From Thalia democratica (Eukaryota), in the NCBI GenBank assembly GCA_965202585.1, contig OZ241831.1:41664001-41728000 (forward strand): a DNA stretch of 64,000 nucleotides. Direction: 5' to 3'. This document shows positions 2,979 to 26,700 of this stretch, piece by piece. The notes under the pieces are model-generated. The model made no database searches. It saw only the letters and a program-made list of their open reading frames with translations, and was not told the DNA's origin. The first letter of the stretch is position 1. Every line of letters starts with the position of its first letter. A program made the position numbers and the translations under genes.

Positions 2979-3193
2979 TAATTGAAGAAGCTCTATATTA
3001 ATTTATTATAGGTAAAGCTTAATTTAATGATCAGTTTTACTAGATGTAAGTAAACTTTTAAATCTTGATAGTGTTAGTAGAGAAGTTTTGTTTAAAACTT
3101 AGATTTCTATAGCAGTGGTATTCAAGCTAATCAAGTTTTGTGTACACCAACCTGAAAAAAAACATCGGTTTGTCCCAAGATATAATTTTTAAA

Positions 3194-3326
3194 AGCGCCG
3201 CTAGTGGTGGGTCTTCGTAAAATTTTTTAGTAACATGTTTCTCTCTAAAGCGATATCTTAACTTATGTTGTGATACTATTATTTATGTTAATGAGATATG
3301 TTTTCATTGAACCCACTAGCGGCGCT
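3194..3326. repeat. 133-bp mini inverted-repeat element (also 24926-25058, 47391-47523)
   Basis: agcgccgctagtgg (3194-3207) and ccactagcggcgct (3313-3326) form a perfect 14-bp inverted repeat in copies 1 and 3. Confidence 0.75.
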
Positions 3327-4330
3327 AATATATCATAATTAAGTTTATTTCTACATGCAAACCTTTTAATAACTCAAGCTGAATCTTGTTATTTAATCCT
3401 AATTTAAATGTACTTTTCTATTTGGTTTGCCTTATTTTTACAATGAGATTTTAGTTATATGGTTTTGTCTTACATAAATATCATTTGAACACATCTTCGC
3501 AACCACTACAAATCCCCAGTAGAGTACTTTTAAAATATTTTATTTAACATTAACTACATACTTAAACTAATTCTATGTCTTTAACTTTTTGTGTATTACC
3601 TACTTCAAAAAATGATATTCAAACAGAAAAATAACACATGAAAAAGGAGTTAAAAACAGATAAATTCTAAATTATGTATATGTTGTTGCTCTCCGTACAG
3701 TTGCTGTAGACATTGTTTCTTTCATAGACTAAATTTTTGCACTTCAAGAAGTTCAGGGTTGTATATGATTGTCACTTCTTTCTGGTAAAAAAACTAAAAC
3801 CTGAAAATTGAAAAATGTTTTGTTGTGAAGTTTATTACATATAACTAGTACATACTATACTATAAGTTTTAACTAGGCTTAGCATTTAATATAGAGTTTT
3901 TCACTCTTTCAAGTAAAAAAGCAATTCTGATTGACCTACAACCAGTTTGTATTTCTTTAAGCTAGTTTAAAATAAGAAAATGTTTATCTATGTTGGCTAA
4001 AAACTCAATATCAAATTAAAAATCATATGTGAATAAAACAGTAATTAACTCAACAAATACTTAATTGAAAAAATAGTTTAACATTCAGAAAAATATCAAA
4101 CTAGTCTAAATTTAAATTAGCTTTTACTAAATGCTACAAACTGTTACTCTATATGCTACTTATGCAAACTTTGGATGGTATTAGTGAGGATATTTTATAC
4201 TAATGAACAAATACACAACTTAACAATAGTATAAAGGACATCATGTTTAAAAAATACTTTAAAGGGAGACAAATCCATAACAAAGATTTTAAATCTGAGA
4301 TAATATATTTTAAGAAATGTAAGCCTAGAC

Positions 4331-4398
4331 CAGGGGTCGGCAGGCAGTTTGTGCTCGCAGGCCAAATTTCGAGTTTCAAAAATTTTAGTGGGCCGCAG
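4331..4398 (+). mobile_element. Isolated hAT-like left end fragment (also 26063-26130, 48528-48595)
   Basis: caggggtcggca...gcaggcc...gggccgcag resembles hAT MITE termini. No partner end found. Confidence 0.4.
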
Positions 4399-5766
4399 TT
4401 TTGGTTTTAGTGATATGCAAAAAATATTATGGTTCTAGTTTTATTAACAATTTTAGGTTACTTTTATTCAGTTTGTTGTTTTAAAATGATTTTAGCTACA
4501 CATAGAATACCTAAAAAACTTATAAACATTTATTGGAATCAAAATTTCATTGACTAATATAGTTTAGTCTTAATAAACCATGTAATATTTAAACAGTTAG
4601 TAGGTTTAATTTACTGTTTTGTAGATAATAAATTATAGTACTAAATAACTTTTAAACCTAGCTTACAATACCTACAAACAGAATTCAAAAAGAAGAGAGC
4701 GGTTTGTTAAAAAAATAAAATTAAGAAATTATTTATATCTAAGTGTACTTCGACATAACTAGTTTTTTTTAAATTTTAGTTTAAATTAAGTAAATAATGA
4801 ATTGCCACGGTTTGGATTTGCAGCGTTCTTTTGCCTTTTCATGCAAGCTGTCTGTTGAAAATGGTATCTGTTCTTGAGTCTTAGTACGTACTTTACGAGA
4901 GTGCGTACCTGCTCTATGTATGTAGTGTAGCTGGTAAACTTTATATACAATGAGCAAGATTAATACAAGGATAAATAAGTGCATGTGATGAAAAAAAGAA
5001 TAGTTTGACTCTCTTGAGGTAGCCAAAATACAATATTTTCAACAGCAACATTTGAGCATCATACGCGTATACATAGTGTTACACTATTAAGAGAGGCACT
5101 TGTAGTGTGTCAGAAAGCGAGCTGACGACCTAGTCAGCTTAGGGATTTTACAATGTAAAGCTACAACGAATAAATCCCTAGACGTCTAAGCGGGTAGACG
5201 TCGTGAAGGCGGGTTGTGTGTTAGTGTGTTTGCAGGCATACAGATTATAGCTTGAGTCGACTTGGCCGTCGACTCGAGCTAGAGTCGAAAGACCGCAGCT
5301 AGGCGATCAAAGGTCGTATAGCAGACCTCATTGAATAAGCACGAAGGGAACGTAAAGCGAGAGCAAGGCACGTACCGTCCTAAGCAAGCCGTTAAGCATA
5401 AAAGCCGCACTCTCGCAAGGCAGTATATGAACGAGCTCTGACATGATTCAGCCCAGTTGAAAGTACGTTTGAGTGCAAAGATGAATTGATTAAGGAATGC
5501 ATTTCTAGAAGTGAAGCTTCGGACGGGCGACTGAAGCAGAGTAGGCGAGGTACTAGAAAATGCGAAGGTGTAGCACTCAAAATGTAACATGTAAAAAAGC
5601 GGCATAATCTCATGGTCGCTTTCAAAGTCAGAGGTCAGTTGAAGCGAAATGTTTTGGAAGGGAAGCAGGAGCTTCGAGAAAACATTTGTAAAACAGCGGG
5701 AGGTCTGTTTTTTCGAAAAGTTGTTGAAAATGAATTTTTGGGTTGTGAGAAGGGTGGAGAGAATAA

Positions 5767-5870
5767 AGAAAGAAAAGTTGGAAAAATTTTGAGCAAAAAA
5801 GCCGTCCGAATTCGCCCGCGGGCGAATTCGGACGGCTTTTTTGCTCAAAATTTTTCCAACTTTTCTTTCT
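5767..5870. repeat. Perfect 104-bp palindrome with no spacer
   Basis: 5767-5818 (agaaagaaaagttgg...gaattcgcccg) is the exact reverse complement of 5819-5870, checked base by base. Confidence 0.97.
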
Positions 5871-5873
5871 ATA

Positions 5874-6067
5874 ATTTTTCAAAGGTGTTCGACAAAAGTC
5901 GAACGCCTTTTTTTTACCCAAAATTTTTTTTGGCTACCTCAAGAGAGTCAGAGTTTTTTGCCTAGTACTATATATTTTTCAAAGGTGTTCGACGAAAGTC
6001 GGATGCCTTTTTTTTACCCAAAAATTTTTTAGGCTGCCTCAAGAGAGTCAGAGTTTTTTCCCTAGTA
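5874..6067 (+). repeat. Two 94-bp direct repeats (period 100), each with a 13-bp hairpin followed by a T-tract (also 27606-27799, 50071-50264)
   Basis: atttttcaaaggtgttcgac[a/g]aaagtcg...cctttttttt...cctcaagagagtcagagtttttt.cctagta at 5874-5967 and 5974-6067. Confidence 0.93.
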
Positions 6068-9000
6068 ATGATTATTTTATCAATTTCACTGATGTCTTAA
6101 ATTTTGAACGTTGCTGCCGAAAGGTTAGCACCATTATTTTTTATATATAATTTTGATAAAAAATGTTAGAGTTTTTAAAATTACAACTATCAATAGCCTT
6201 ATTAGAGAAATGTAGAAAATATTTTTTACTTTTGATACTTATAATAAATTAAGATTTAATTTATAAAGATATAATCAAAACAATGATAGTAAAAAGGCTT
6301 GTTTGTTATTTGAAATATGTAAGATAAAAATATTACAAATTAAACTTTATATTTCAGGTTAGAACTTTTATATTTCAAATTGAAAATAAGTTTTAATGTT
6401 CTTAACAAAATTACGCATTGAAATTTTCAACATTTTCACGTTTCTAAGACATGCTTTATTTTTTAATAAAGTTTTAAACTAATGGGAATTTACTTACAAA
6501 CGAGAACTATAAAAGTAAGCATGCCAAAAAAAAAAACTTAAGCACGTGTACATATATTACTTAACCTGATAAGATAATAAATCCAATTGTACAAACAAAA
6601 ACAAACTAAACTCGTATCTGTGCCAACGAACAACTATGTCAAAAAGAAAATTAAAAGTGTTGTTTTATAATTAGAATTTTTTTTTGTATCTGACACTTAA
6701 TGAAGCAAACTGTTTAATTCAACGTTGATACTCTTTTTAGTACTTGTGTGCAGTTTTCTATATAGTTTTCTATACAATAAACAAATTTTTAGGTAGCAGG
6801 CATTTTGATTAATTTTGTTAAACGTTTGTAATTCATTTAATTTGTTCTTAAAAATAAAAGAATATGGTTTAGTTTGTTAAATAAAACGACAAAAACCGAT
6901 AAAACATTTAGTGTAGTTGAGAAACAAGTAGCTTATGTATAAAAACGATTTATGTGATTCAATCATGTAATTTAGTTTAGTTAACATAAGGCATATTTAA
7001 GTATAGACAGCTATATGTAACTATACTGATTTTGTTTGAGTCAACTATCATAGACAAGTTCTCAATTAATGAAAAATAAAGATACTTCACATTTTTTTAT
7101 ACATGCGCAAGTACTTGGTAAAAACTTTAAATAACTAAACAAAAAGCTTGCGAAACATAGGCTACTCCCACAACTGATTTCTGAATACAATCTAGTTTCG
7201 TTTAGTTTTCTTTTATCGCTCGTTTTATTTATTTAATTATAAAGTTTTAAGTTTTAAACTTAAAACTTATCGGCTCGTTAACCATTGTAAAACCATGTGG
7301 TGTACGACTCGAAAACCGAAAAGTTCTTTCGAATACCAGGTCTTTAGAAGAAACTTTTTAATGCTTTTTTTGCGGTTCAACGAACAATAAAAAATTGAAA
7401 AGGGAAGGTTAAAAAAAAGCTACTAGACGAAGTGGTCTAACGTTTTCACGCGTTGTCAAACTCTTGTAATCAACATATTTTTCTCTATACTTAGCTAGAC
7501 GCTCAAAAATGTAACGGCGACTTTTGCGAGACTAAGTGTCTGTTTCCATTATATGATCATTAAAAACTTCACTTTCAGCTAAGTTTACTTATAGAATATG
7601 GTTTTATAAAAGCATGTCTTGGTAGTTAATTATTTTGATTTAAGTAAAGTACTTGACAAATACAGGTATTTCTCATAAAACTATTCGCAGATTTTTGACA
7701 ATTACGGACGACGCAAGTTGATTTTACGAGAAAAGCTATTGAAAACAGAAAAAAAGTCTAATAAAAGAGATGAGTACAAATTATATTGAAAATAAGAGGT
7801 ATACTCATTTAGACATTTTGCAATAGCGTTATGAACGCTTTTCAACAATCTATCTGGAGTATTTTAAAGTTATGTAATTTAACATAATCTAATGAACGTA
7901 AAGATAACTTATGAAAAATATAAAAATCAACAAACGTGCGAAGATTTAAAACTGTAAACTTTGAAAAACCGTCTTTTTTTACGATCAAAGTTAAACACAA
8001 TATTTTATTTAAACAAAGCGTCATGCGACTAAAATAAAGCAAATTTATAATTTAAACAAAAGAGTCGTTAATAATATAGCTTTGGTAGTTACAGCACAAC
8101 ACCTATGACAGAACTACTCTTATATATCTTATACTACTTAAACAACGATTACTTGTCGAATTTTTTCATGATATTAAGGTACTTCATAAAGAGAAACATA
8201 TTACAAAATAGAAGCAAATTGATTTAGTGACATTTAATTTTATACTCGTTTAATCAAAACTAACATTTAAACGGTTAAATATGTAGTTGCTATCTTGCAT
8301 AGTTGGTCATTTCATGCAGTTAGTTTTTGTATATGAACTGAAGAAAGACCTAAATAAAAATATCAGAAGCGTTATCTTTTACAAAGCTTGAGCTTTATTT
8401 AATACGCAAGTGAAAACTTCCAACAAGAAACAAAATCAAATACTAAAACTATTAAGAAAGGTTGATTTAGAAATACATTTATTTTAAGAAAACATCTGTT
8501 TAATGCTCATTCCGAAGTCAATACACTGCGAAGAACAGTCCTGGACAAAAAATTTATGTAACTGTGGCGTATTAGTTGATAACCGAAAGGTTTTTCGTAC
8601 ACCAGGTCCTTAGATCAAACTTTTATTGAGTGTTTCTATCGACGTTCAACAAACTGACTGTACATACGAACTAACTTCCAAGCATGTATAAAAATTTTGA
8701 TATATATATGGCAAGTTTCCTTCAAGTTGCGTAAACAAGTCGAACATTTGTGTAATATATTTATTAAACGGTAATAAAAACTATGCAAGCTGTGTTAGTA
8801 TAAGTGTCACTATATAATATTTCAAGAAAATTGCAGCTATACTCTGATAAATCACTTATTCGGGTAAAAATAGTTTTTTCTCAAAAACTCGATTTCATTT
8901 TATCTTTACAAGAATTCTGGACATTATGAAAAAGTTGCTTTTAAATAATGGTGATGCTTTAAAAAATATATATACTTAAGTATATTATCCAATAATCTAT

Positions 9001-12000
9001 TGTGTGTGTCTTAAGATATTTCTCTTGATAAAGATGCCCTCATAAATATCTTATTTTTAATACAACTTACATAGTACTTATACATTTGCAAATATGAACC
9101 ACAAAATATGTCCTAACTTATCGTTTCCTATCTTATGGGATCAATAAAAACTGCTACGGATAGAAATGAAGACATGTCTTCTTAAAATGAACAACATTGT
9201 ACTTGTGGAAACTTTACTAAAATTAATAGTAACAATAATTTTGCTTTAAACGACTACTTTAAATCAATTAAATAAACTAATTATCAAACCCAGAATTATT
9301 AACTCTTAAACCTAAAAATTATATAACAAACATTAAATTATAACTGACTGATAGTTTAATTTGCGATAAAACAAAAATATTTATATAAAAATTGAGATTC
9401 ATTTCCGGTTGTTGCCCGTCCAGTTGCACAAACTGTTCTTCAGATCCAAGTTGCTTCCTTTAAAATTTATTTATAGTTATACTACTTAATACCATATAGA
9501 CTATTATGTTTTTTTGTTTGTTTAAAACTCTATTTGGTTGAAAAAAGACTAATTAAATATTATTTAGTTTTTAAGCATATTTTTCGGTTTAGTATAAATT
9601 AAATGCAATTCCGTGCTATTAATAAATAATACAGGCACAACTGTTATTAGATACACAAAAAGTAGCAGACTAGCTTAAATTAATTTTTACAATAGTAATT
9701 TTTTAAAAACTTAAATAATGTCAAAGGAGTAAACTAAAACAAAAATATTTTGGAGACTTAAATTTAATACTAATAAATCACATAAAAAAAGCCAAAAATA
9801 ATAAGGTTTTACTACTAATTACGTATTTAAAATACTTCATAAACATTAGTTTTACACTGAAAACGATAAGATACATATTAAATTAAATACTTTACCATTA
9901 CTCAGAGACGATTATAAGTTTATTAATTCGGTAGACTAAAAATAATAATATTTTAGGTGTTAGGGATATAAATTATTTTGACTTATATTTCATATATATT
10001 TATGTTAATCGAAAATTGTTAATGAAAAAACATTATACTGACGTGGAAACAAATACACCAGTGATTTAGCTCGATTAAAAGATGTAGTCCTTTTATCAAT
10101 GTTTAAATAGATGTTTAATTAAAAACAAAGCATTGTCTTTGAAAAAATTTACAACCTACTAGAAATTAAATAAACATTAAAACACTATCTGAAAGCATGC
10201 TGTTTAAATAAAATGTTAAGTTAACATTACAAAAAATACTACGTTAAACCACTATCAAAGCTGCTACAATTTTCACACAACTACTTGAAAAAGACTTACA
10301 TCTTTAACTAAATAATAAATAAACCGGTAGAACTTTTTTAGTAGAGAAAGCTATAAACGAGTGTAAACAAAATTACTTCATTTAAAATCATTTAAAATGT
10401 ATGTATATGCATTTAGTATTTAACATTAATATTCTAACAAAACTTAGTAAACTATTACTAAATTTAAATAAAAAATATTGACAAATACATTGCATTTTTA
10501 TTGAAGTAGAAAACTTTTCTAAACACACTTATCAACTACTGTTGTGTTTAACTAAGCTATAAATAGTATTAACATGTATTAAAGTTACTTATTGGTTACT
10601 TCATTATAAGTTTAAATAAAAATGTGAAATAAATACTGTTTAAATAAAAATTTTTTGAAAATTAAATAGACAATACTTTTTAAGCATAAGTTAATAGAAA
10701 ACAACTTAAGATGGTAAAAGGATATTACAATAAAGTATATACATATGAAACTTTTAGAGTCAATAATAATAATAGATAAGGCTATGAAAACATTAGAAGT
10801 AAAATATAATCATCTGAACTTAAATAATTACTTATGTAAAAGGAATAAAGCAAGTTATGTATTTAAAAACTAAAATTTCAGAACATGTTATAGTATACTT
10901 ACGCAATTAAAAAAAGTATTTAAAGTAAACTGAACAAAAATATTTAAACATTAAAAAAAAACAACTATAACAGTTTGTACAAGTTAGTATTGTAAACTAT
11001 TAATAAAAAGAATATGTTATTATCTATACATAGTAATACTTATTCATTTAACATAACTTTTTTCCTTTACATTAATTTGGTAAAAAAAGAAGTATTGCTA
11101 TGTAAAAGTATACTAAAAATAAAAAATATTTTAAATTAATTACTAATAAATTTTAAAGTTATTTCTATACTTTCTTTTATTAGTAAAATTATTAAAATTT
11201 TATTAAAGGCTGAAACTTTTTAAATATTGACTCTCTAATAAGTCAAGTATGTTAATCAATAATTCTAACTACCTTTCTTAACTCCGCCAGTTGATAGTTT
11301 GTAGCGCTGATAGAGGTCACTTCGGCTTACGTGTGTCATCAAAGCTCCGTGTCACTCAAACTTATTTCCTTCCACAACATGTTTACTTGACTGTAAAATA
11401 AATATATTATAATTCATACACATTTGATTAAAGTTTTATAAAAATTGAAATAACTGGTTAATAATCTAACTGTTTTAAAAAGTTAACTGATTGTTAAAGT
11501 TTGTGCGAGTTTAAAACTAAAAAAAACTTACTTGGACACACAAACTTGCTAAACTTAAACCTTGAGACTTCCAGTCTCCACAGTGTGCTCAGTAGGGTTC
11601 ATAAAAATTATTTTACTGTAAACAACTAATCAAGTCAGATGAAAAATGTGTTTGTAATTAAAGCTGTTTTCTTTTGTGAATATTGGAAAAGTCCAGTTAT
11701 AACATAAATTTTAAAAGTTCTTATTTTTAGACATTCAAAAGATGACAAAACACTGTCTTTATAGTGAATTGTCCACAACTTTAGTTTTATTTATTTAGTT
11801 TGCACAGCTTCTGAAAGCATAAAGACCACTATGACCTGCAAGCACAATAGAAGTAAACAGTTTTTAAATATACTAATAAAAAAAATAGCATATTAAGTAA
11901 TGTGTTACATAAAATGATAAACTAGTATCAAAGTGTCATTATTGCTCCTTCTCTTTTTTACTAATAACAAGTTGCAATTTAATAAAACAAAACAAAGAGC

Positions 12001-12221
12001 ATAGTTGCACAATTTAATTTTTTTTAATAAACTTTAAAATGTATCAGATGTCAAATTATAGATGGCTACAATTCTTTTTTGTAAGATAATGAAAGTAAAG
12101 TTCTGACTTTTTAAAGCTACCTAGATAAGGTTATGAGTTTTTATGTTTAGTTTAAAATCTTCACCAACTCACTTTTAAATCTATATAAATTTTCTAAAGC
12201 TTTGATGTTATTGTTATACAC

Positions 12222-12473
12222 CAGGGTTTCCCAAACTTTTTTACTAATGGCCCCCTTCAACATATAGGTTACTCAAAAACTACGAAAAAATACACATATG
12301 AGCTTTTTTTTTGCTCTTCAACTGCAACTCCAGAATATCTAGTGTAAGTTTCAAGTTATAGCCTCATGGCCATGGCCCCCCTGTGGCTCCTTTACTGCTC
12401 ATGGCCCCCCCTCTTCCCCCTTTGCTGCTCATGGCCCCCTAGGGGGCCACTTTGCCAACTTTGGGAAACCCTG
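12222..12473. mobile_element. 252-bp hAT-type MITE
   Basis: 14-bp perfect TIR cagggtttcccaaa/tttgggaaaccctg, 8-bp TSD ttatacac/ttatacat (7/8 match), and internal ctcatggcccc repeats. Confidence 0.88.
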
Positions 12474-15124
12474 TTATACATCATAAAAACTTAATGGATC
12501 AACTTAAAATTTAAATATAAGGATCTATTTGAAACAAATGTCTCCAAGTGCAGTAACCTCTTCAAAAATAAGGACCTGTTTTGCAACTAGAACTTTCCTT
12601 TAAAAAGAAGTGTAATCATGTAAAATAATTTTTGTTTCATAATAAACCTTGCTTCACAATCATATTTAGTATAAAATTGTAGGTTTGTTTATAAATTAAT
12701 GTTTAAAAGTTTCACCACTATCAAGCTCCCATTATGTGAATTCAAATTATTTAAAATTAAGTTTTTTTAATGTTGTTTAATCTATAATATCATTTGAACA
12801 TAACATTAACATGGTTGTCACCTTTTAGAGCAAAAAAAGCTTGAAAAGACAGTCTGAGTAGGGATAAAATTTTATAAAAAAATTAATTATAACAGTAATA
12901 ATAATCAAGCTCAAATACTAAAATAATATAAATAGGACTTGATAAAAGATTTGTTTAAGAAAGAATATGTTTAAATTCCTTATATTTAAGAAAAGTGTAC
13001 AAACTATCTAAGTTTTGAAAAAAAAATGTACAAGCTTAAGTTTACTTAGCTGGGTGGCAATTCTGCTTAAGACATTTGAACAAAAAGTTCAAAAGAGTAT
13101 TTGATGTGTCACTCTTAAACTAAAACTTTGACTAACCTAAATATAAATTTTTCCCTTAAAAGAAATCAATCTTAAGTAAAACATTAATGGGCAGTTGTAT
13201 GAAAAGTAGTAAAAAATCAAGATTGTAGTCCTGACAGAGATAAAAAAAGGTAAAACTATGAAAATTTTTATATAAAATGAGAAAAATTAAAGGCAAAAGT
13301 GGAAGTAGTACTAACATGCATAATGAAACTTTACTAAGGTTGAGAAGCCATTGAAAAATCTTTATTTTAGTTCAAAAATTTTTTTAAATGAACTTCAAGA
13401 AAAAAAATAACAAACTGAAACTTTTGTAGAAATCTGTTTAAGTGTTAATAAATTTACATGTTTGTTAGTTAATTAAATTAATGCTAAGTTTAAAACTTAA
13501 ATTGACAGAACTTTGACAACTATAAAAGTATTAAAGTTGCACATATAATGGGACACTGGAATAGATATTTTTGAAGCAGGCTCAATTAATGTTTAAATTT
13601 TATTCATATTTAAAACTGTGCATTATTTTAAAATAAAGTTCAGTATACTATTTGACTAACTTAATTTAACAGTGTGGCCACTGGTTTATTGTAAATTTCT
13701 TCCAGATTTTTAGATATAATTTAATTGTTTATTTTTACTATATAATTAAAACTATATTAAAAACAAATGTCTAAAACACTATAGTATCATTAAATAATAC
13801 TATGGTTATAATTGTTTGTTTTTATTGATAAAGAATTTTATTTTTTAGAGAATTTTTATATCTCAACAAAATTTTACTACTTCACATGTAAAAGTAGTTC
13901 TAAATTCCAGGTTTTTTAGAGGTATTTGTTCAAAACTACAATTTTTTTCAAATTTCACTAACTACAGGTTATGCAGGGGTTTTTGTAAAATTTGTCTAAA
14001 AAGTCAAATTCCAGGTTTTTCAAGGACTCCAGATTTTTTTAGCACCCTGTTTTAATTATATTTTGTACCTTTAGTGATTTAGGTAACTATGATTGTATAC
14101 AACATAATAGTAACTGTAACAAAATTTAGAATAATGTCTTTTAGTATGATGTTAAATTTGGTACAAAAACTTGTAAATACAAAAGCAAATTTACATACCT
14201 TGAAAGTTTGAAAAGGGAGTTATTCCTGTGGAGCTCTGGGTTTCATTTTGTTTAGGATGACTTTCATCATTGAAGATCAGGAGGACAGTGAATATAGTTC
14301 TAAAAATTTATAACCTAAAATTAACATAGAATAACAAAATTTTTAAATAAATTTGTAGAGAAGTTTATTCAATTTTACAGAATAATTTGATGTCATGGTT
14401 TAAATGTCACAACTTACTTGGTTTTAATTGAACATGCCTCTGTGCCAAGGTATAAACAATAAGAGACAACAATTGCTTTTTTTTCACTACAAATAATGAA
14501 ACAACCATTTTAGAAGTGTTAATAAACATTTGAAAATTCGCTAAAAACTAGTACCAGAGAACAGTTTTACAATAAACACAAAAAAGGCATATTAATTTCT
14601 CGCTAACCTTTCAAGGCTTAAATAACTTAAAGTCAAAAATTGCAAAGCACAAAGTTATAAGCAATAAATTATCATTAAACCTAATAGTTTTTTTTTCAGA
14701 GCTTTATTTTTTAGCAACTGGATTTTCATAGTTATTGAGTAAGTAAATATATAATAGTTTGTAAGCTAAGAGCGCTTTGTTAATGATATAATATTTTATT
14801 TTGTTGTATAACATTAAATCTACTTTTAAAAAGACTAGTATTAAACAAAAGACAAGACCTGTTTAGGAAAAATATGAATTACAAAAGCTTTACTTTTATA
14901 CTACTCAAGTTTAAAACCTAAACATTAATGTTTGTTATTCATACGTTTTTTTAAGTTAATATTTTTTAGTTATCGGCAATAAATAAGTAAGTTTCAGCTT
15001 AAAACATTAGTAAACAATGATTAAAAAAATGTACTAAAATATTACAACTAGGCTTATAATTTTGTAGTTCGTAGCTATTTATTATATTATTATTATTAAA
15101 GCGTTAAAAAACCTTAAATTATAA

Positions 15125-15770
15125 GTCAAGGGACAGATATTTTACCACCAACCTAGATCAATGACAAGGATATCGCAAATGTGAAACACTTTGGATACCT
15201 TAGCTTCAGACTCCCACCCGTTGATCAAACTCATAGTTAGACACAGAAATAACTAGTCGCATAGGTAAGGCCTCAGGCACTTTCGCTTGTTTGTCTGCAA
15301 GAGTATGGGGTAACCAAAGTTAAGCATTCTTACAAAGTCTAACGTTTATTGTTCCTGTGTATGCAGTACTCTGCTATACGGTAGCGAAATAAGGATATTT
15401 ACTAGCGTCCTGGAGAAGAAAAAACAATACCTTTCATTAACAATGCCTTTGTCGCATCCTTAGAATTGCATGGAATCAAAAGATCACCAACGAGGAAGTG
15501 TTGAGACGTACTTGTGATACTACCATGTGGTTTACCCTCAGTCAGCGCAGGTTTCGCTGGGTCGTTCATGTTCTGAGGATGAGTGCTGAGCGAATCCCAA
15601 AGTTTGTCAATTGCACACGCTACAGAGGTCGTCCAACATTACGTTTTAACGACGTATGCAAGCGTGACCTAAAAAGCTGGAATATAAGAACTGGTGAATG
15701 GGAATCGTTTGCAAATGACCGTGCCAAATAAAGATCTACTGTTAACAAAAGTCTGAATGAAAGGAAAAAA
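15125..15770 (+). mobile_element. 5'-truncated, decayed RTE-clade LINE (C-terminal reverse-transcriptase region)
   Basis: Fragments LDTEITSRIGKASGTF..L..RVW, TK..VY..CV.STLLYGSE, FH..CL.RIL.I.W..KITNEEVLRR and RGRPTLRFNDVCKRDLK, interrupted by stops and frameshifts. Includes track ORF 15498-15731. Confidence 0.85.
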
Positions 15771-17232
15771 GAACTTTAAGAAAACGAAAAAATGAAATGA
15801 GAAGCGCAATGAATTTTATCAATTTGATTTTATTTATTTGTATTTTTATTTACTATTGACGCTTTTTTTAAATGTTTGTTGGATTCTTATAGTAATCTGT
15901 TATAGTTATGCTTAAGTTGGATCTTCTTGTCAGTTACATAGTTAGAATTTTTTCAAGGCAAGTAAATTTTAAAAATTAGACCTGCAAAAATTTAATATTC
16001 AGATATCCAACTATTACAGTTTATAAGTTATGCTGAAGTCTAGCGCTGCGGTTGTTTACAAATCTGTTACTTTTTTATAGTCAATTAGCTTTTATTTTCA
16101 GCTTAAGAATTTGCACAAGTTGTTCTATAACTTGCACAGGCCTACTTAGATAACCAAACTTATACAGAAGTTAGGCGAACTTGAACATTTTTCTTTTATT
16201 TCTAATCTTCGTATACCATAAAAAGTAACTGAAATTTTAAAGAAAGTTTACTAGAAGAGATTTGATCTCATTTTTTTAATTTAAATTTCAAAGGTTTAAA
16301 AAAAGTTTGTTGGTTCCCAGCAAAATTTACTGCTCTAAAGTTGAACTGTCTCTCAAAATAAACTGAAAATGTGCCAATTATGTAGTCAACAATACTACCT
16401 AAAACTTAAAACTTTTTGAATTATGCCGCTTTTATAACAAGTTTTTACAAAAAATGAATGTTAATTACAACTGATACTTAAAAAACTTCAACTTCAGCAA
16501 AACAAACTTATTTGTATTAAGTTTTTTGAAACTTTACCTGAACATTGTACTAAAAATATTCTTTTAATTATCGAACGTTGGCTAAAAATTAATTTTAAAG
16601 GTAAAATACGTTTATACAATTAATTTTAGAAATAAAAATTCTATAAAACCAAAAACTAATAAACTTAATTAAGATATCAGCCTTTGTTTTATCTTTTTAT
16701 AGTGAGTCTTTAATTACAACTTATTAAAAGCATAATAGAACAACAAATACATTGTTACATTAGCGGTTATTATACACAATGGAAGTTAAAAGTGAAAACA
16801 GATATGTTAAGTTACTAACTATTTGATTAAAGTAAACGTTTTCCGTATTCGTAAATTAAATCTTTGTTTTTGTTGCATAAATTATTTTATTATTCATGAA
16901 AGTCACAAGCTAAACTTTAAAAATATGATGATTGACCTAAGAAACTATTTGATATTTTTCTAATTAAGTTAATATTATTCAAGATATTGGTAAACTTCGG
17001 CCTATGGTAAAAACGTAGAAAGCAAACTAAAAACTGCTGCAGGTACTTTTAAGCTTAAACTGTACTTGTTTGAAACAATTTAGAAAAAGTTAAAACCCAA
17101 AACTTATTGATAGTTATTACTCAACTATTGTTTTTTGTTTAAATACCATTTATTTAGAATTTAGATAGTTATATTTATTATGATTAAAATATTATTGAAA
17201 CAACTGCAGTCCCGCAAGACTTATTTTTATAC

Positions 17233-17885
17233 TAGGGGTACGCAACGTTTTTCTATATACGGGCCGGATCCGGAAAAAATTATTCTTTAGCGGGCCGGAG
17301 CATTTTGAGTTAGTGATTTACCGGATCCAGCCGAATAATGAGTTTTTAGATTTGAATCCGACTAGATACTTATTTTAAGTCGAGATACGGATCTGGTCGG
17401 ATTCTTATGTAAATAAAAGTTTCGGATCCGGCCATAATTTAATTTTATGGATACAGTTGATCACTTTTTTACATCCTTCAAATTGAAAAAACTTTCTCAA
17501 GTCTGACAACTTAAGATGTAGATTGAGACATGTCAGAATTTTAAATAATGTCTATAAGTAGAATTGACATTGTAATTGACAAAGGTACGTATGTAAAAAA
17601 AAAAACACTTTGCTTGGGATATTTCACTAAAAGATATTCTAACTAATTTAGAGCAACACAAAATATTAGGACAAAATAGTGTGTTTATTAGTACACATTA
17701 TTTTATAAAGTAGTTTTTTATCATATTTTTTTAGTCAAATTCTTACAGTGATTTGTAAAAATATGATACAAAGTTTTATACAAGTTTTGTAATATTGACC
17801 CTTTGCAGGCCTGTAAATTTTCTAGCGGGCCAGTAATTTTCATTTGCGGGCCGGATCCGGCCCGAGGGCCGTACGTTAGCCACTT
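17233..17885. mobile_element. Degenerate hAT-like non-autonomous element with a nested ~155-bp MITE at 17312-17465 (also 38965-39617, 61430-62082)
   Basis: Ends are taggggtacgcaacgt and gggccgtacgttagccac, with subterminal gcgggccggatccgg motifs. The inner element has imperfect TIR agtgatttaccggatcc/ggatacagttgatcact (13/17). No TSD found. Confidence 0.55.
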
Positions 17886-18612
17886 TTTAAGGAAGCTTGG
17901 CTTGTTACTTGTAAAAGACTGCTGACACCTGTTTGTATACTAGTTTTTAATTTAAACATAATATTTTAATTATTTAGATCAATCAAATATTACGACAAAT
18001 ATCTCTACTACAGGGTTTTCAAAACTTTTTTTAAAAAACCCCTTTAAAGAAGTTAAAAAAGCTATGGCCTCATCCAACAAGATTTTTCGAAAAACTACCA
18101 TTAAAAGCAATTAATTTTTTTTAGCTACTTAACATCAACTTTTTGACTAGTAGTTGTAACTTAGATAAAGTATTTATGTTACTGTTAAATATAAAAAGGT
18201 AAAAAAAGCTACACTAACAATTCAACAACGACTGAATGTTTCGGGGAGAACCTGTAGATAAAAAGCCACTCAAGGGTTTGATCTGGACAAAGAAATGAGG
18301 AAATCTTTTACGAATGTAAGGGGTTGCTGCTAAGTAGAGCGATAGGTTGCATTTCGACTGAAATGATGCAATATAAGACGTAACAATTGGATGAATAGCA
18401 AACTTCGACTTAAAAGATGAAAAAGATGACGTAACAATTGAAAATCTTCGTAATTTTAAAATGACACAATACTGGCAACTTTGTTCCTTACATTACGGGA
18501 AGCGCGCTGCATTAAGCAAAACTAAGCTTTTATGCCAAAATTATTCAAGAAAATTAGCTTTCCTTTTGGGGAAAATTTACTTTTGCGCTGAAACTTCATA
18601 CACTTTAACTGG

Positions 18613-18800
18613 GTAAGCTGTCAAATTTGCACGAGCGTACAAAATTGCACGAGTGCACAAAATCGCTAAAATAAACTTTTGCACGAAGACACTATGCACG
18701 AGGGAATAAAATTGCACGACAATACATTTGCACGGGTTATTTTTTTCTTATTTAATTTATTTTTTTTATTATCACTTTTTACCCTAACGCTTACCCTCGG
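18613..18800 (+). repeat. Cluster of six tgcacg motifs, probable subterminal repeats of a DNA transposon (also 40345-40532, 62810-62997)
   Basis: tgcacg recurs six times within ~110 bp after gtaagctgtcaaat. No matching opposite end found. Confidence 0.5.
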
Positions 18801-20882
18801 TCGAAGAATCGAAACGTAGATGCCTAATAAAGTTTTTCATACTGTAATGAAATCAATATTTGATTTTATTATTTTAAATAAATAAGTTAAAAAGGAGTTT
18901 TTTGTTTCGACGGCGTAAAACATTCATAATTCTTAGAAATAAGTTATTTTAAACCGAAAACAATAATGAGCTTTCTGAAAACAATTTTCCAAGTTTTTAA
19001 AACATCATTGTTTACTCGAAGAAGTTAGTTTCTTTCCAGTGCGTGTATATTGGTGTTTGTGTTTCAAATACGCGTTAGTTAGTTAAGTTTTTGTGCGTTT
19101 CGTACGCCGTCTTAAGTCACGATGATGATCAACGCAACATCAAGTTAAGTTCAAGCCAATGAAGTAAAATCTACATCGAAAAAAGTATACGTTTTCTAGT
19201 GAAGAATAAGTTACACATTGTCAAGCAACCAGAACACCTAGTCGTGTCTAAGAACATGAATCTAAACGAGTTCCTTGATCGAACAATTCATTGTCGAGAC
19301 CATAAGTATTTTTGCATACATTTTATTATAATAGACCATTTGTTTATTAACTAATACAGTTCTTTCTTGAGTTTTAAAATGCTACTTGACATTAATTCAT
19401 AGAGCGTTTCAATCATGACTTGGTAACAAGTTACTTTAAGTTTTGTAACTTTAGTATTGTAAGCTGCTTTTAAGTAAAGCAGTCAGTTTAGCTTAAGTAC
19501 TTAGAAACCATGTTTAAGACGATAAACATAATCAGTTTAATAAATATTGTTCTGTGGTTATAATACTTTACTATGTTTTCAATAATATTTAATTCAATCT
19601 AAAACGATGTAAAAAATGTTTATCTTTAAGAAGTAGCAATAATTGGGTTATAACTTAACAATACTAAATACAAAAAAAAAAATTGTTTAAAAAATAATGA
19701 AGATTAACAGTTGTACTCCAAAAGCAAAAAATAAAAAAAGGATCAAAAAAAATATATGTTTGTTAAAAATAAAATCTATTAAAAGGTATAGAAAATTTAT
19801 ATGTATAAATTTTTTTTGCCCTTATAACTATATTTTAACCACTAAAAATACACCTAAAATTGAGTTTTTATTCTTAATAGTTTAAGTTTACTAGTTGTAT
19901 AAAAGGTTTTTTAATTTGGTCATAATAGGACCCGTAATTAACCTGTTTTCAAGGGCAAACTCTTATTGTCTTGTTTTGTCGAAACCATGTTACAAGGTTT
20001 TATAAAAATTTCGTAATATTATCTTTGGCGGGCCGGATTTCACAATGTGCTTTTTTCACATTTTATATTGTAAAAACGTGTTGCAAATTTATCTAATTTT
20101 TTTTTCGTACTGATTGTTTAAGACGTTGTGGTTAGTTTTAACAAGTTACTGATTTTATTTTGCTGAACTATGATTTTTTTATTCTATTTGAAAATTACTT
20201 CTATAATGTCTTAAAATAAATTATAAAAGTTATTGCTAGTTGCTTATTTTACAGAACTAACTGCACGAAAACTTTTCTCTATAGTTATTTTATTTAATAA
20301 GTAATATTATATATATTAAAACCTTAGAAACCAATCATAGAAAAAAAATAAAAGGACTTCTTAAATGATAACAAGTGTTATGCAGAAATTTGAGACATGA
20401 TTAAATCAAAAACATAATTATTTAAACAAAAAAGTAAAATGGATTTTAAATAACACTTATCAACTACTAGTTTTTATGATTGTTGTTTGTCGCTTATTTT
20501 ATATATTTATCGTATTTTTTGTTTTTATTTTTATACGTTTGCTTATCTTAGTTAAATTACTAATCAATTTATCTATAATTATGTAATTATAAACTGGTAA
20601 TCTGTCTCTAATTGATTTTGCTTAACTATGCTAATTAGTATTAATTGAATATTTTCTAATTAAACCTCTAAATGTTTATTTACTCAAAATTTATCTTTAA
20701 AATTAGTTGCTAACAAAAGAAGTTGATAATTATTAGCTAAAATCGATTTTACTTGTTTGTTTATAAAAATATTTTTTTAAAGGAATCATGTCTCAAATTT
20801 CTAATTAACATATGTATTACAAAAAAGTTATATAGTAGCAAGTAAAAATAATTATGTTATGTTTATTTTATAATTTGTACGC

Positions 20883-21838
20883 TTAATTTTTTTCGGTCTC
20901 TAGTGACGTATTTCTCGATAAGCAGTTTTTTGAATTACACGCACAATCAAAATCACGAAAATACCCTTCTCCGTACCAAATGAAGAGTTGCTCACTAGCT
21001 CTGATAGCTTTTTTGCTGATGATAAAGTTCCTAGGAATTCCATTGATCAGAGCGTACTCTGTCCTGCAATTTAATTTATCTTCGCAATCGTGGTTAATGA
21101 ACCTGGTATGGTTGCCCATTGCGCCCGCGTCAATATCAAAATTCGTGCATGTGCTGAAATAGTAGTTGGTAGCCCCTTTATTCTCACGCCACCTTTTAGT
21201 CTTTTCTTCTTTTGAAATAAGCTCGCCTGTATACTCTCCTATTATTGAGTCTGAAAATCAACAAATAATAAGTTTAATATCCAAGCTAGTAGTTTAATTT
21301 AAGAATTATTTAGTCAAAATTTTCATTATAACAAAAAAAAGTTGTACATTGAAAAAAAAGTTAAACAATGAAACTTACTTGCTGGTATAGCATGCTTAGC
21401 GAACAGCCCACGGCCCATTTTACCACTAAGATTGTCCACATAAAAATGTTTTTCAGGATCGTCAAGGCAGTCATGATTGAACTTTTTTAAACTATCCAGT
21501 TCAATAAAAGAAGCTACATGTTTTATCTCATCCAAATAAGTATCGCTTCCAATCACGAGGTGGTTCGTCCAAACATGATGCTTCTCTGTATTGAAATGAT
21601 AGTAAGGATCAAAAACGTCGTCAGGCCCTTCCTTGAATGTCCTTTTAACTTCGAATTTTCCCTCCAAAGCAATTTTCTTCCATTTTTGCTTGCTTGACGA
21701 TCGTATTTTAATGCTGAGTGGTGCAAATTTTTTCAACGTATTCCTGATTGGAACACTTCTTATAACGGCCTTCCTTGCTGTCTGCTTTTTGTAGCTTTTT
21801 ATTCCTGATTGCTTATAAAAACTTGTTTTTACTGGCAT
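20883..21838 (-). CDS. SET-domain lysine methyltransferase with post-SET Zn motif, 275 aa, 2 coding exons: complement(join(20883..21250,21379..21838))
   Basis: Donor GCAA|GTAAGT at 21378 and acceptor TTTTCAG| at 21251 define a 128-bp phase-1 intron that joins the two track ORFs in frame (460+368=828 nt). Product reads ...MGRGLFAKHAIPANSIIGEYTGELI...NYYF...IDAGAMGNHTRFINHDC...AIRASEQLFIWYG...FDCACNSKNC, i.e. GxG, EYxGE, RFINHxC, catalytic Tyr and CxCx4C motifs. AATAAA lies ~16 nt after the stop (20862-20867). A probable 5'UTR intron spans 22141 (CAG|GTATGG) to 21870 (CTAAC...TTTATAG|). Confidence 0.92.
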
Positions 21839-23561
21839 TTTATAGTTGAGAAATTTAGCATATAAATGACTATAAATATGTTAGATAAGTAATTTAAGAA
21901 ACTTATACTGTTATAATATATTTTATATCCGCAGTATGTATCATAAGTTTATCTAAAGCTTGAAAATTTCGAATGATACTTCAACCTTTTTCATATAAAC
22001 CAGGAAAAACAAATGAGTTATTAGATAAAAATCTAAAACATTATACATAAAGAGTAATATACCAGATTTTATAAATAAAACAAGTTATTATTAAATTGAG
22101 TTTTAGAAAATTCTGAATTTTAAAATGTTATTATACCATACCTGATTCCCACATCAACAGTTTTTTTTTTTAAGTGTTAAATAAACAAATTAAAATAGCA
22201 ACTATTATCAAATCCCTGTAAAAGATGATTAATAATTGATTAAGAAAATGAAGGTAGAGATGGATACCGAACTCAGATACAAAAACCAAGTTGTAAGAAA
22301 TGCAAGAAATGATAATAAACTATCAACCTAGGAAAAGATAATTGTCAATTAGAATATAAAATGCAATTGAAGCTTACAAAAAAAGAATAAGTTACAGCAG
22401 ATAATGAAAAATAAACAGCAGGTCTTATCAGTAATGAGAGAAAAAAGTATACTGTGAATCATTGCTAGTGAAACTGCAAAGCATGAAAAAAATCTGTTAT
22501 CTAATGTTAACAAAATTGAGAACTTTCAAAGGAATTTCAATTTTTAAACACAGGGTGTATCAATTGAAAGATAATGAGAAATCTAAAAATACTAACAAAG
22601 TATTACTAGAAAATAGTATTACTGTTCAACAAATTTATTTAATATTATTATTAATTTAATAAAGTGTTGGAAGGAACAAAAAAGAAAGTTAATAAAATAA
22701 TAAACATTTATAAAATTAAACTTGTTAAATATAACAACTTTAAACAAAATGACTGTTCACTTGACTTATTATATATATACACTCCTAAAACATAAATCTA
22801 ACAACAAATATAACTACATAACCTGAAACTTTATCTATACTAAGTTAACTTAACACTAACCTTAACAACTGAAAACAACTTTTTTTATGTTCGCATGCGT
22901 GTAATTGAACATTTGTGGTTTGTGGTGTGACCTCAGAACTCGAGACAACACTGTTGGGCATAGTATTTTGAGAGAATTTAGGGTTTTATAACCCGCGACG
23001 AGTTCAAAAGACTTTTTTGCTTAAATAATTTTCAAATGTTTAGGCTAACCCAGAACATCGACACCTTGTGATGAATTTCCCGTATTTTTTTTAAGTCTTG
23101 TTTTTCTAAAAGCGAAATGGTGCAATTCCGTGGATTTGAACTTACCAGGAACAAAAGAACTAGAAAAAACTTACCAGGAATAAAAGAAGGCAGGGATATA
23201 AATCTAAAAAAAGTAAAGAAAACATTTAATGCTAAAGTTTAATATAAATGAGGTTAAAATTAAACTATGTTTCTCAATAACAGAGTTTTTATTTGTTCTC
23301 TTTCTAACAATAAAATAAACAAAGAATACTTTTCAAGTGAGTCATATGATTTTTTAAATTGTTTTTTTCGAAATACTTTTTAATTTTTGTTATGATCAAT
23401 ATAAAGCTTTTGATAGTAATAGTGGTATTCTAATTACAGAACTTAATTTTGATATTGAGACTGGACAAACTTTTGTTAGTTCACAATACATATCTAGTAA
23501 CGTTAATCCATTTTAGTTTATAGTAAATGAAACTGAAAAACTACAAATATAATAAGATAAA

Positions 23562-23795
23562 ACAAATCTTCCTAAACAACAGTGTTTAACAGTTACTTGC
23601 ATATAAAAGATTTTAGAAAAGCTTAGCAGTAACATAATAGAATCGCTGGAAACAACTAGTGTTGATATTAAAGTAGCCTTCAGAACAGATTTAGTTGGAA
23701 ACTATTTCTCATTGAAAGATCGAATGGATAAATTTTACAGGAGTTGCATCGTTTACAAGTTTCAATGTCCGGGTGACCTGGATACCCAATTCAAG
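23562..23795 (+). mobile_element. Penelope-like relic, copy 2
   Basis: Offset 22465 from copy 1, same sequence. Confidence 0.65.
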
Positions 23796-26700
23796 TATAA
23801 CTCTATAATAAAAAAAATAAAAATAAAAGTTAAAGGGAAAAAATGTACCAGATAAAATATTTCTAAAGTTTAACTTAAGGTAAGTTCTAAACCTAGGATA
23901 TCTAAAGCCGTGTTTACATTTACAAAATAAATAATAAGCTATTCAAAACTATTTGCAAAAACAGTTTTAAAAGTCAAGTAAAGGTAAAACATAATAAAAA
24001 ACTGAGAAATAAATTAAAATATCAAAATTAGTCTAAAAAACATACTTTGAAACAAACATTCTAATTAACATAAATCAAAACACTCTTAAATAAAAATTAA
24101 ATGTATTTTTTTAAATTTAAAGAGTTATCAATGAAATATGCAACAAAAACAAAAAGAAAACTACTTCCTACTTAAAATTTAAATAAATAAAGTTGTTTTC
24201 AAAGCTAATTGATATAGTTTATAAACATAACACAAGATTTGCTTATTAGTAAACAGACATGTCAGTAACATAAATCAATCAAAAATAATGCAGTAATATA
24301 AAATACAGCAGAAACAGTTTCATCTGGTATGATGCGATAAATGTTGAAGTATATAACGTTACAAAAATTTAAACTCAAAGAAAGCCAGTAGTGAGGATTA
24401 GATATCAGTCAAATTCTTAAAAAAGGCAACATTGTATCTCTAGTAACTAAAAAAAACTAATTAGTCAGGTATCCTGTGAAAGTAAGTACCTAAATAGTTT
24501 AAAAGTAGCAAAAGTAATACAAATACTCCAGTCAGGCTCAAAAAAGATAACAGGAAAATATAGTATATAACAACTTCCATTTTATCTAATTTAAACAAAT
24601 CTACAATAAAAACTTATACAATAGTTCCAAAACAGTTTGTAAATTTTTTTACTAAATACAATGACCAATTTTTTTTTCAGATCAGGCTATTCTACCACCT
24701 TAGCTTTGAATGAATTAATTGAAGGAGTTCTATAACAATTTATTATAAGTAAAGCTTAATGATCAGTTTTACTAGATGTAAGTAAACTCTTAAATCTTGA
24801 TAGTGTTAGTAGAGAAGTTTTGTTTAAAACTTAGATTTCTATAGCAGTGGTCTTAAAGCTAATCAAGTTTTGTGTACACTAACCTGAAAAAAATAATTGG
24901 TGTGTCCCAAGATATAATTTTTAAAAGCGCCGGTAGTGGTGGGTCTTCGTAAAACTTTTTAATAACATGTTTCTCTCTAAAGCGATATCTCAAGTTATGT
25001 TGTGATACTATTATTTATGTTAATGAGATATGTTTTCATGGAACCCACTAGCAGCGCTAATATATCATAATTAAGTTTATTTCTACATGCAAACCTTTAA
25101 ATAACTCAAGCTGACTCTTGTTATTTGATCCAAATTTTGATGTGCTTTTCTATTTATTTTGCCTTTCTTTCACAATGAGATTTTAGTTATGTGGTTTTGT
25201 CTTACATAAATATCAGTTGAACACATCTTCGCAATCACTACAAATCCCCAGTAGAGTTCTTTTAAAATATTTTATTTAACATTAACTACATAATTAAACT
25301 AATTCTATGTCTTTAACTTTTTGTGTATTACCTACTTCAAAAAATGATATTCAAACAGAAAAATAACACATGAAAAAGGAGTTAAAAACAGATAAATTCT
25401 AAATTATGTATATGTTGTTGCTCTCCGTACAGTTGCTGTAGACATTGTTTCTTTCATAGACTAAATTTTTGCACTTCAAGAAGTTCAGGGTTGTATATGA
25501 TTGTCACTTCTTTCTGGTAAAAAAACTAAAACCTGAAAATTGAAAAATGTTTTGTTGTGAAGTTTATTACATATAACTAGTACATACTATACTATAAGTT
25601 TTAACTAGGCTTAGCATTTAATATAGAGTTTTTCACTCTTTCAAGTAAAAAAGCAATTCTGATTGACCTACAACCAGTTTGTATTTCTTTAAGCTAGTTT
25701 AAAATAAGAAAATGTTTATCTATGTTGGCTAAAAACTCAATATCAAATTAAAAATCATATGTGAATAAAACAGTAATTAACTCAACAAATACTTAATTGA
25801 AAAAATAGTTTAACATTCAGAAAAATATCAAACTAGTCTAAATTTAAATTAGCTTTTACTAAATGCTACAAACTGTTACTCTATATGCTACTTATGCAAA
25901 CTTTGGATGGTATTAGTGAGGATATTTTATACTAATGAACAAATACACAACTTAACAATAGTATAAAGGACATCATGTTTAAAAAATACTTTAAAGGGAG
26001 ACAAATCCATAACAAAGATTTTAAATCTGAGATAATATATTTTAAGAAATGTAAGCCTAGACCAGGGGTCGGCAGGCAGTTTGTGCTCGCAGGCCAAATT
26101 TCGAGTTTCAAAAATTTTAGTGGGCCGCAGTTTTGGTTTTAGTGATATGCAAAAAATATTATGGTTCTAGTTTTATTAACAATTTTAGGTTACTTTTATT
26201 CAGTTTGTTGTTTTAAAATGATTTTAGCTACACATAGAATACCTAAAAAACTTATAAACATTTATTGGAATCAAAATTTCATTGACTAATATAGTTTAGT
26301 CTTAATAAACCATGTAATATTTAAACAGTTAGTAGGTTTAATTTACTGTTTTGTAGATAATAAATTATAGTACTAAATAACTTTTAAACCTAGCTTACAA
26401 TACCTACAAACAGAATTCAAAAAGAAGAGAGCGGTTTGTTAAAAAAATAAAATTAAGAAATTATTTATATCTAAGTGTACTTCGACATAACTAGTTTTTT
26501 TTAAATTTTAGTTTAAATTAAGTAAATAATGAATTGCCACGGTTTGGATTTGCAGCGTTCTTTTGCCTTTTCATGCAAGCTGTCTGTTGAAAATGGTATC
26601 TGTTCTTGAGTCTTAGTACGTACTTTACGAGAGTGCGTACCTGCTCTATGTATGTAGTGTAGCTGGTAAACTTTATATACAATGAGCAAGATTAATACAA

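Follow-up and report, generated by a model that had tools for sequence, protein, structure and literature searches.

The window analysed here is a stretch of 64,000 nucleotides from Thalia democratica (assembly GCA_965202585.1, contig OZ241831.1, positions 41,664,001 to 41,728,000 of the forward strand). On its minus strand lies a gene whose rebuilt model comprises 2 exons and 828 nt, ends with the stop codon TAA, and encodes a SET/post-SET protein of 275 aa. The main feature of this protein is its N-terminal tail, in which residues 18–23 read KQTARK, identical to residues 4–9 of histone H3, and are followed by A-V; the rebuilt model confirms on this point the original prediction that had drawn attention to the gene. 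Judged by its conservation, KQTAR(K) appears to be a selected short linear motif that imitates H3. By analogy with known histone mimics, it may act as a handle recognised by the writers and readers of the H3 tail, probably in a methylation-dependent manner, a reading in which our confidence is about even.

The KQTARK hexamer and its conservation

The 18-mer encoding the hexamer (AAGCAGACAGCAAGGAAG) is found at exactly two sites in the window, 21770–21787 and 43502–43519, both on the minus strand, and its chance expectation over the same stretch is 0 matches, even allowing 2 mismatches. The second site, which had been listed beside the first, is an exact match but not independent evidence, because it belongs to the same gene, with an identical coding sequence, in a near-identical tandem duplicate of 21,732 bp.

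A word-indexed search retrieved 17 homologues with 45–93% identity, all of them from marine metagenomes or metatranscriptomes. KQTAR is present in eight of these (P0001–4, P0006, P0007, P0009, and P0010), down to ~55% identity, with drifting flanks, and both K18 and R22 are invariant in the alignment. Codon comparison of the window gene with eight homologous loci gives ratios of nonsynonymous to synonymous substitution rates (dN/dS) which, as all-pairs sums over related sequences, describe a pattern and not a formal test: 0.05 for codons 18–23 over 7 loci, or 0.09 over 9 loci with the degenerate ones included, against 0.56–0.79 for codons 2–17, 24–33, and 44–58. The earlier expectation that the motif is conserved while its flanks drift is thus borne out. 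A second segment, the anchor TLKKFAPLSI (codons 34–43), has a dN/dS of 0.12–0.17, and in a sliding-window scan of the tail the hexamer and this anchor are the sole two constrained islands. Synonymous variation is found at four of the six motif codons (CAG/CAA, GCA/GCG, AGG/AGA, and AAG/AAA).

Several relatives vary the motif in an informative manner. P0009 harbors KQTARK twice, as a result of an exact 24-nt duplication, and P0006 has a degenerate second motif unit, reading KQTARKTGKQIAKKTARK. In P0020, the hexamer is extended to KQTARKTGGKARK, which resembles H3 4–17, and the residues following the hexamer (TGGKARK in P0020, TGK in P0006 and P0009) correspond to the same H3 4–17 context. The scenario under which the original prediction would have failed, a chance match in a K/R-rich nuclear localisation signal (NLS), finds no support in this conservation, in the dN/dS values, in the P0009 duplication, or in the P0020 extension. 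The residue after the motif is Ala in the window protein and P0001 only, most relatives having T or S instead (ARKT/ARKS). The alanine that had been noted at the position of H3 S10 is therefore real in these two proteins, but the proposal built upon it, that the mimic cannot be switched off by phosphorylation, does not describe a family property.

P0020 also deserves description in its own right. Within its residues 1–62, it starts with MVRTK, like the ARTK of H3 once Met is removed; ARK occurs there five times, and TRKQL and KQTARKTGGKARKTGGIARKTPGK are present as well. The resemblance to H3 goes furthest in this member of the family, which sits on a long branch; its residues 1–80 gave no match in the PDB at E≤10.

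Collinearity of the tail with H3

The resemblance to H3 extends beyond the hexamer. When residues 1–50 were compared with the 177,635 distinct sequences of the PDB search set, 40 matches were obtained, all of them histone H3 (E 1.4–2.8), and the best ones were ungapped, with tail residues 5–37 lying on H3 5–37. A profile of 11 tails found H3 only among the 60 matches listed of 85 (best E 0.18), always with positions 4/5–37 on H3 4/5–37. These matches are confined to the N-terminal tail of H3; in a homologue model, residues 40–277 adopt a SET fold, and no histone-fold domain follows the tail.

Because PDB-wide E-values of this size are not significant alone, composition-controlled directed tests were run, and only such tests were used, because raw scores of 44–49 are attained even by poly-Ala/Lys low-complexity segments from unrelated SET proteins. 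The best ungapped BLOSUM62 segment between the tail and H3 scores 52 at offset 0, with 13 identities (K4, K9, G12, K14, K18, Q19, A21, K23, A24, S28, P30, K36, and K37). Shuffled tails score 22.9±4.3 against H3, with a maximum of 46 (n=5000), and the real score was reached by 0/5000. In the reverse direction, 1/50,000 shuffled H3 tails reached the score of real H3 against the tail profile, and 114/50,000 did so when the hexamer columns were masked. Nine family members align with H3 best at offset 0, namely the window protein and P0001–4, P0006, P0008, P0009, and P0011; z is 5–8 in these eight homologues, including P0008 and P0011, which are without KQTARK. In P0011, KKQLGRKSPRKSVP stands opposite RKQLATKAARKSAP of H3 17–30.

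These tests bear on the reading in which the conserved motif is unrelated to histones, being part of an NLS, a nucleic-acid-binding patch, or another partner site, so that its identity to H3 4–9 is coincidental. Lys and Arg are indeed abundant in the tail (13 and 4, respectively, among its first 60 residues), and the insignificant database-wide E-values as well as the scores of low-complexity segments also speak for a coincidence. The three composition-controlled results, including the one with the hexamer masked, argue against it, however, as do the conservation of the non-basic Q, T, and A and the extension of the P0020 match to H3 4–17. In addition, KKQTARK lies outside the classical NLS consensus K-K/R-x-K/R. 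We regard such a coincidence as quite improbable.

The collinear register puts the hexamer on H3 18–23 (KQLATK) and leaves separate lysines at tail positions 4 and 9, while the alternative register, with the hexamer on H3 4–9, yields 11 identities. Both partly fit, because the H3 tail is internally repetitive. Of the register on H3 4–9 that had been assumed at the outset, the identity of the hexamer is retained, but the tail taken as a whole aligns otherwise.

Profile searches extended the family to ~40 full-length members, all of them from marine metatranscriptomes or metagenomes and 0 from annotated NCBI genomes. In most members, the tail (3 to ~250 residues) is acidic or unrelated, but the anchor is kept as [LM]K[HK][LF]AP. 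In a tree restricted to the folded part, one clade (support 100/99) takes in all but two of the basic-tail members, the exceptions being P0187, just outside this clade, and P0023, among acidic-tail members. All the motif-bearing proteins of the tree (the window protein, P0008, P0009, P0011, P0020, and P0019) belong to the basic-tail clade, with P0020 and P0019 being long-branched and the tail of P0019 consisting of RQTGRK[TS] repeats. Since every motif-bearing member falls in one clade, a single origin of the basic H3-like tail is possible, and this tail appears to mark one clade of an unannotated marine family. A scan of IMG/VR with the family profile found no viral relatives, and a giant-virus or viral-insert origin was dropped for this reason.

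A common origin and a strict register could also be expected if the tail were the relic of a captured H3 N-terminal coding segment, or a hitch-hiker on H3 logistics that is kept for importins and histone chaperones. The enzyme would then be delivered along the H3 import and deposition route, without any reading or writing of methyl-lysine. The collinearity from the N-terminus, at an offset of exactly 0, to K36/K37 is in line with such a history, as is the possible single origin of the basic tail. Moreover, the H3 residues that are kept vary from member to member (L20 and R26-K27 in P0011, T11-G12 and K27 in P0002), as expected for drift from an H3-like ancestor. On the other hand, most of the tail evolves at a dN/dS of 0.56–0.79, which is weak for a multi-contact import signal, and the tightest constraint includes Q19, T20, and A21 besides the basic residues. 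Capture or hitch-hiking is, in our estimation, distinctly unlikely.

Other observations concern the tails of the wider family. The family is split between the basic H3-like-tail clade (11 rows) and acidic-tail clades, whose tails reach a net charge of -38 and ~250 residues; these strongly acidic tails might bind histones. Tandem tail repeats of 9–11 residues occur in P0019, P0021, and P0089 (ALNRPARQI, VVRNQPVREI, and RQTGRKTIARA), and expansion of repeats seems to be a frequent mode of tail evolution in the basic-tail clade. Finally, P0171 has Met (LMHLAP) and P0183 has Thr (MTHLAP) in place of the anchor lysine equivalent to K36, the Met variant recalling the K-to-M histone mutants that inhibit SET enzymes.

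Catalytic domain, gene model, and tandem array

Conserved motifs and fold comparisons indicate that the window gene probably encodes an active SET/post-SET lysine methyltransferase with a SETD2/NSD-like catalytic fold. The translation of exon 2 matches the Pfam SET family PF00856 (E=7.1e-16, 59 bits for a cut-off of 22.4), and exon 1 matches no Pfam family at E≤1. The protein harbors GRGLFA, GEYTGE, RFINHDC, EQLFIWYG, and the post-SET sequence CACNSKNC (residues 256–263). GxG, YxG, NHxC, the catalytic Tyr, and CxCx4C are invariant across family alignments; this last motif is the post-SET zinc motif, with C267/C269/C274 invariant in the family alignment. Its sequence neighbours in the PDB are EZH1/2, NSD, and SETD2 (E 1e-14 to 1e-12). 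In the fold ranking, SETD2, NSD1-3, and ASH1L come first in both Foldseek (E ~1e-12) and VIA-align (Z 16.5), with ATXR5, EZH, and G9a/GLP close behind (Z 15–16), and VIA-align places residues 40–277 of the homologue model on SETD2 1448–1688. The likeness to G9a/GLP that had first been suggested therefore does not extend to the enzyme, whose catalytic domain is nearest to the H3K36 enzymes SETD2/NSD/ASH1L. No AWS domain precedes the SET domain, PF17907 being found in 0 of the ~40 full-length members in precomputed Pfam lists, and pre-SET (PF05033) has no match in the window protein or the family. Their place is taken by a family-specific N-terminal domain of ~100 aa with a single invariant Cys, C124.

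The models used are AlphaFold2 (AF2) predictions of the homologues P0009 and P0008, with a mean predicted local distance difference test score (pLDDT) of 88.4 and 89.4, respectively, and P0008 has the same 275-aa architecture as the window protein. Along the tail of P0008, the block-mean pLDDT rises from 54 (residues 1–10) to 63 (11–20), 77 (21–30), and 93 (31–40). The low values at its start point to a flexible segment of ~20 residues. The hexamer is predicted to lie at the hinge between the flexible and packed parts of the tail, and the stretch equivalent to H3 K27 to K37, to pack onto the folded body. The K36/K37-equivalent lysines are those of the anchor that is kept family-wide.

This predicted arrangement recalls pseudosubstrate switches of the EZH2- or Clr4-loop type. 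The tail would fill the enzyme's own lysine channel, either with the hexamer lysines or with the K36/K37-equivalent anchor, and its methylation in cis would release it and activate the enzyme. The hinge position of the hexamer, with its gradient of pLDDT, and the predicted packing of residues 21–40 on the catalytic body are compatible with such a switch. So are the strong constraint on the anchor and the alignment of its lysine with H3K36 in a protein whose fold is closest to H3K36 enzymes. A precedent exists in the methylation loop of EZH2 (K510/K514/K515), a flexible basic pseudosubstrate that is methylated in cis (PMC6771386). By contrast, both KQTARK copies of the P0009 model lie in low-confidence, undocked sequence, and clades that have no H3-like tail keep the anchor too. 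It may be an N-terminal structural flank instead of a ligand of the groove, the VIA alignments beginning at model residue ~40 opposite SETD2 ~1448. A switch in cis is unlikely, although its probability is appreciable.

The gene model is supported by homologous sequences. Across the predicted splice site, intron-free homologous transcripts read ...IPANSIIGEYTGE..., and the genomic homologue P0006 runs into an intron at the junction position of the window gene. Because homologous transcripts carry in-frame stops 8–9 codons upstream of the ATG, the window ATG is taken as the true start and the tail as the true N-terminus. The homologous transcript L001 is polyadenylated directly past AAATAAACATAACATGATT, whose counterpart in the window, AAATAAACATAACATAATT, lies 15 nt after the stop codon. 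Homologues of the window gene are polyadenylated, spliced mRNAs, and its close relatives are transcribed. Table 1 presents the features of the gene and of its array unit.

Table 1. Features of the SET gene and its surroundings, in window coordinates
Feature	Position	Strand	Remarks
KQTARK codons, residues 18–23, identical to H3 residues 4–9	21770..21787	-	dN/dS 0.05–0.09
H3-like N-terminal tail, residues 1–37	21728..21838	-	ungapped and collinear with H3 4–37; low pLDDT at residues 1–20 in homologue models
Anchor TLKKFAPLSI, residues 34–43	21710..21739	-	dN/dS 0.12–0.17; block-mean pLDDT 93–94 in homologue models
Exon 1: tail, family-specific N-terminal domain, and start of SET (GRGLFA 21398–21415)	21379..21838	-	
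Intron, 128 nt, GTAAGT..TTTCAG	21251..21378	-	same position in genomic homologue P0006; missing from transcript homologues
Exon 2: SET core (GEYTGE, RFINHDC, EQLFIWYG), post-SET CACNSKNC (20922–20945), and stop codon	20883..21250	-	
AATAAA poly(A) signal, 15 nt past the stop	20862..20867	-	homologous to the site used by polyadenylated transcript L001
Second gene copy, identical; KQTARK at 43502–43519	42615..43570	-	in the next repeat unit
One array unit	3030..24760	.	

The window as a whole is a tandem array containing parts of at least four units, with periods of 22,465, 21,732, and 22,465 bp. Units start near 3030, 24760, and 47230, and the preceding one ends at ~1836–2130. Copies 1 and 2 differ at ~5 positions between 3561 and 24299 (~20.7 kb) and have identical coding sequences, a near-identity that reflects either very recent amplification, gene conversion, or assembly duplication. 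The unit is gene-poor: the SET exon-1 frame is one of three open reading frames (ORFs) of at least 110 aa in positions 1–25000. Public sequencing runs that match the window gene yield DNA-like contigs that pass through the intron. They cover the gene at high depth and contain many 90–95% variants, none of them within 21770–21787, and these many variants agree with a multicopy family.

A pure chance match, or a decaying pseudogene copy in a repeat array, would be compatible with the location of the gene in a recently amplified, gene-poor repeat and with the DNA-like nature of the runs covering this copy. Nevertheless, its ORF is unbroken, its splice sites, poly(A) signal, and catalytic motifs are all preserved, the family is under purifying selection, and close relatives are transcribed, which makes this explanation highly improbable.

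Some further features of the locus can be noted. The other two ORFs of at least 110 aa overlap each other at 5279–5965 (minus strand, 189 aa; plus strand, 117 aa), and Rfam and tRNA scans of the window gave no matches. Summed contig depth in three public runs jumps from 200–1000 over the SET gene to 33,000–56,000 at 20700–20790, indicating that a very high-copy repeat adjoins the 3' side of the gene. Lastly, the 5' untranslated regions (UTRs) of the paralogous transcripts L001 (1–88), L008 (1–72), and L009 (1–67) are conserved almost throughout and have an in-frame stop in common. A spliced leader was ruled out in favour of paralogous UTR conservation. This segment, which is unrelated to the DNA upstream of the window gene, could be a regulatory UTR in common or an upstream exon.

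Proposed role and comparison with known histone mimics

Short H3-like motifs in lysine methyltransferases (G9a and SETDB1), as well as in ATF7IP, recruit chromodomain proteins (10.1101/2025.10.22.683908). The reading that we favour extends this principle to the window protein: its motif would be recognised by factors that normally engage the H3 tail, namely methyl-lysine writers and chromodomain- or PHD-type readers. K18 and/or K23 would probably be methylated, and the enzyme would be tethered through the motif to chromatin-bound partners, as described for the ARKT/ARKS motifs of G9a and SETDB1. The methylation of the motif, the identity of its writer, and that of its reader are all points that we infer.

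A number of observations weigh against this role. First, the K9-equivalent K23 is Asn in P0007 and P0010, and of the pair of K4- and K9-equivalent lysines originally proposed, only K18 is invariant. Second, the motif is degenerate in P0008 (KQPGRK) and P0011 (KQLGRK) and lost in the P0012/P0165 subclade, and therefore it is not indispensable. Third, the likeness of the catalytic domain is to H3K36 enzymes and not to K4 or K9 enzymes, so that one would not readily expect the protein to methylate a K4/K9-like site of its own. To these are added the PDB-wide E-values for H3 (0.18–4.8), the raw scores of unrelated low-complexity segments, the DNA-like nature of the public runs, and the use of structure models from homologues with ~57–72% identity to the window protein.

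A more far-reaching proposal joins the tail and the enzyme. The tail, with K4, K9, K14, K18, K23, K27 in paralogues, S28, P30, K36, and K37, would stand in completely, residue for residue, for that of H3. With its K36/K37 equivalent fixed to a SET domain of the H3K36 type, it would form with the enzyme a self-contained 'writer plus substrate tail'. Open to the whole histone-modifying machinery of the cell, the tail could gate the enzyme in the manner of a soluble chromatin-state sensor or decoy. In that case, genetic conflict, for instance with transposons or within the germline, would account for the tandem amplification, the fast evolution of the tail, and the acidic/H3-like split. This joint proposal is tentative, and we hold it to be improbable in its entirety.

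If the tail is modified and read like that of H3, it would surpass in completeness every other natural histone-tail mimic fused to a chromatin writer. The family would then offer a compact natural system for studying how writers use cis-tethered, substrate-like tails in targeting and autoregulation. It consists of unannotated, expressed, and amplified animal genes, with one clade carrying the exact H3 hexamer under strong purifying selection, and it supplies natural variants in which the motif is lost or duplicated, K23 is changed to Asn, or the anchor lysine is replaced by Met or Thr. To our knowledge, histone mimicry within lysine methyltransferases has been known only as motifs of 3–5 residues (G9a/GLP, SETDB1, EZH2, and Clr4).

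Among known systems, G9a/GLP (EHMT2/EHMT1) provide the precedent of a SET methyltransferase with an H3K9-like ARK[T/S] motif in a disordered N-terminal region (10.1101/2025.10.22.683908). Most relatives of the window protein have ARKT/ARKS as well, whereas the window copy has ARKA. Unlike G9a/GLP, the window protein carries the full hexamer of H3 4–9 in a tail that follows H3 for ~34 residues, is devoid of pre-SET and ankyrin repeats, and has a fold nearer to SETD2/NSD. The G9a/GLP motif is automethylated and bound by HP1. SETDB1 also harbors short H3-like motifs inside a methyltransferase, its H3K9-like A(R/L/I)KS motifs recruiting chromodomain partners with catalysis unchanged (10.1101/2025.10.22.683908). 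They are 4 residues long and located in an insertion of the catalytic domain, whereas the window motif is N-terminal, longer, and part of a collinear tail. In EZH2 (PMC6771386) and Clr4, a conserved basic loop that is flexible and tethered to the SET domain serves as a pseudosubstrate in cis, and the window tail, predicted to be flexible at its start, is likewise basic and tethered; those loops, however, are internal and only loosely histone-like.

Other mimics are found outside methyltransferases. The N-terminal SNAG domain of SNAI1/GFI1 is an H3-tail mimic that binds the LSD1 cleft (PMC5066116), and the H3-tail mimics (H3TMs), exemplified by VRK1, are non-histone N-termini that obey the H3K4 reading rules of PHD fingers (PMC8166343). 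As in SNAG, an N-terminally anchored stretch mimics the H3 tail in the window protein; SNAG, however, belongs to transcription factors of the zinc-finger type and is directed in trans at a demethylase, whereas the mimic described here is fused to a modifying enzyme. The sequence identity of SNAG to H3 is low. As for the H3TMs, the family member P0020 resembles them in starting with MVRTK, but the window protein starts with MPVKT, is without an A1-R2-T3-K4 free N-terminus, and has its exact H3 match internally.

Finally, the catalytic part has its nearest neighbours, in sequence as well as in structure, in SETD2, NSD1-3, and ASH1L, with which it shares SET plus the post-SET CxCx4C. They differ from it by an identity of 21–26%, by the lack of an AWS match in the window protein, which has the family-specific N-terminal domain of ~100 aa instead, and by the small size (275 aa) and stand-alone nature of the latter. 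Compared with all these systems, what appears to be new, as far as the sequences indicate, is that the mimic is longer and more exact, continues in register to K36/K37, and is attached to a SET2-like rather than a SUV39-like enzyme.

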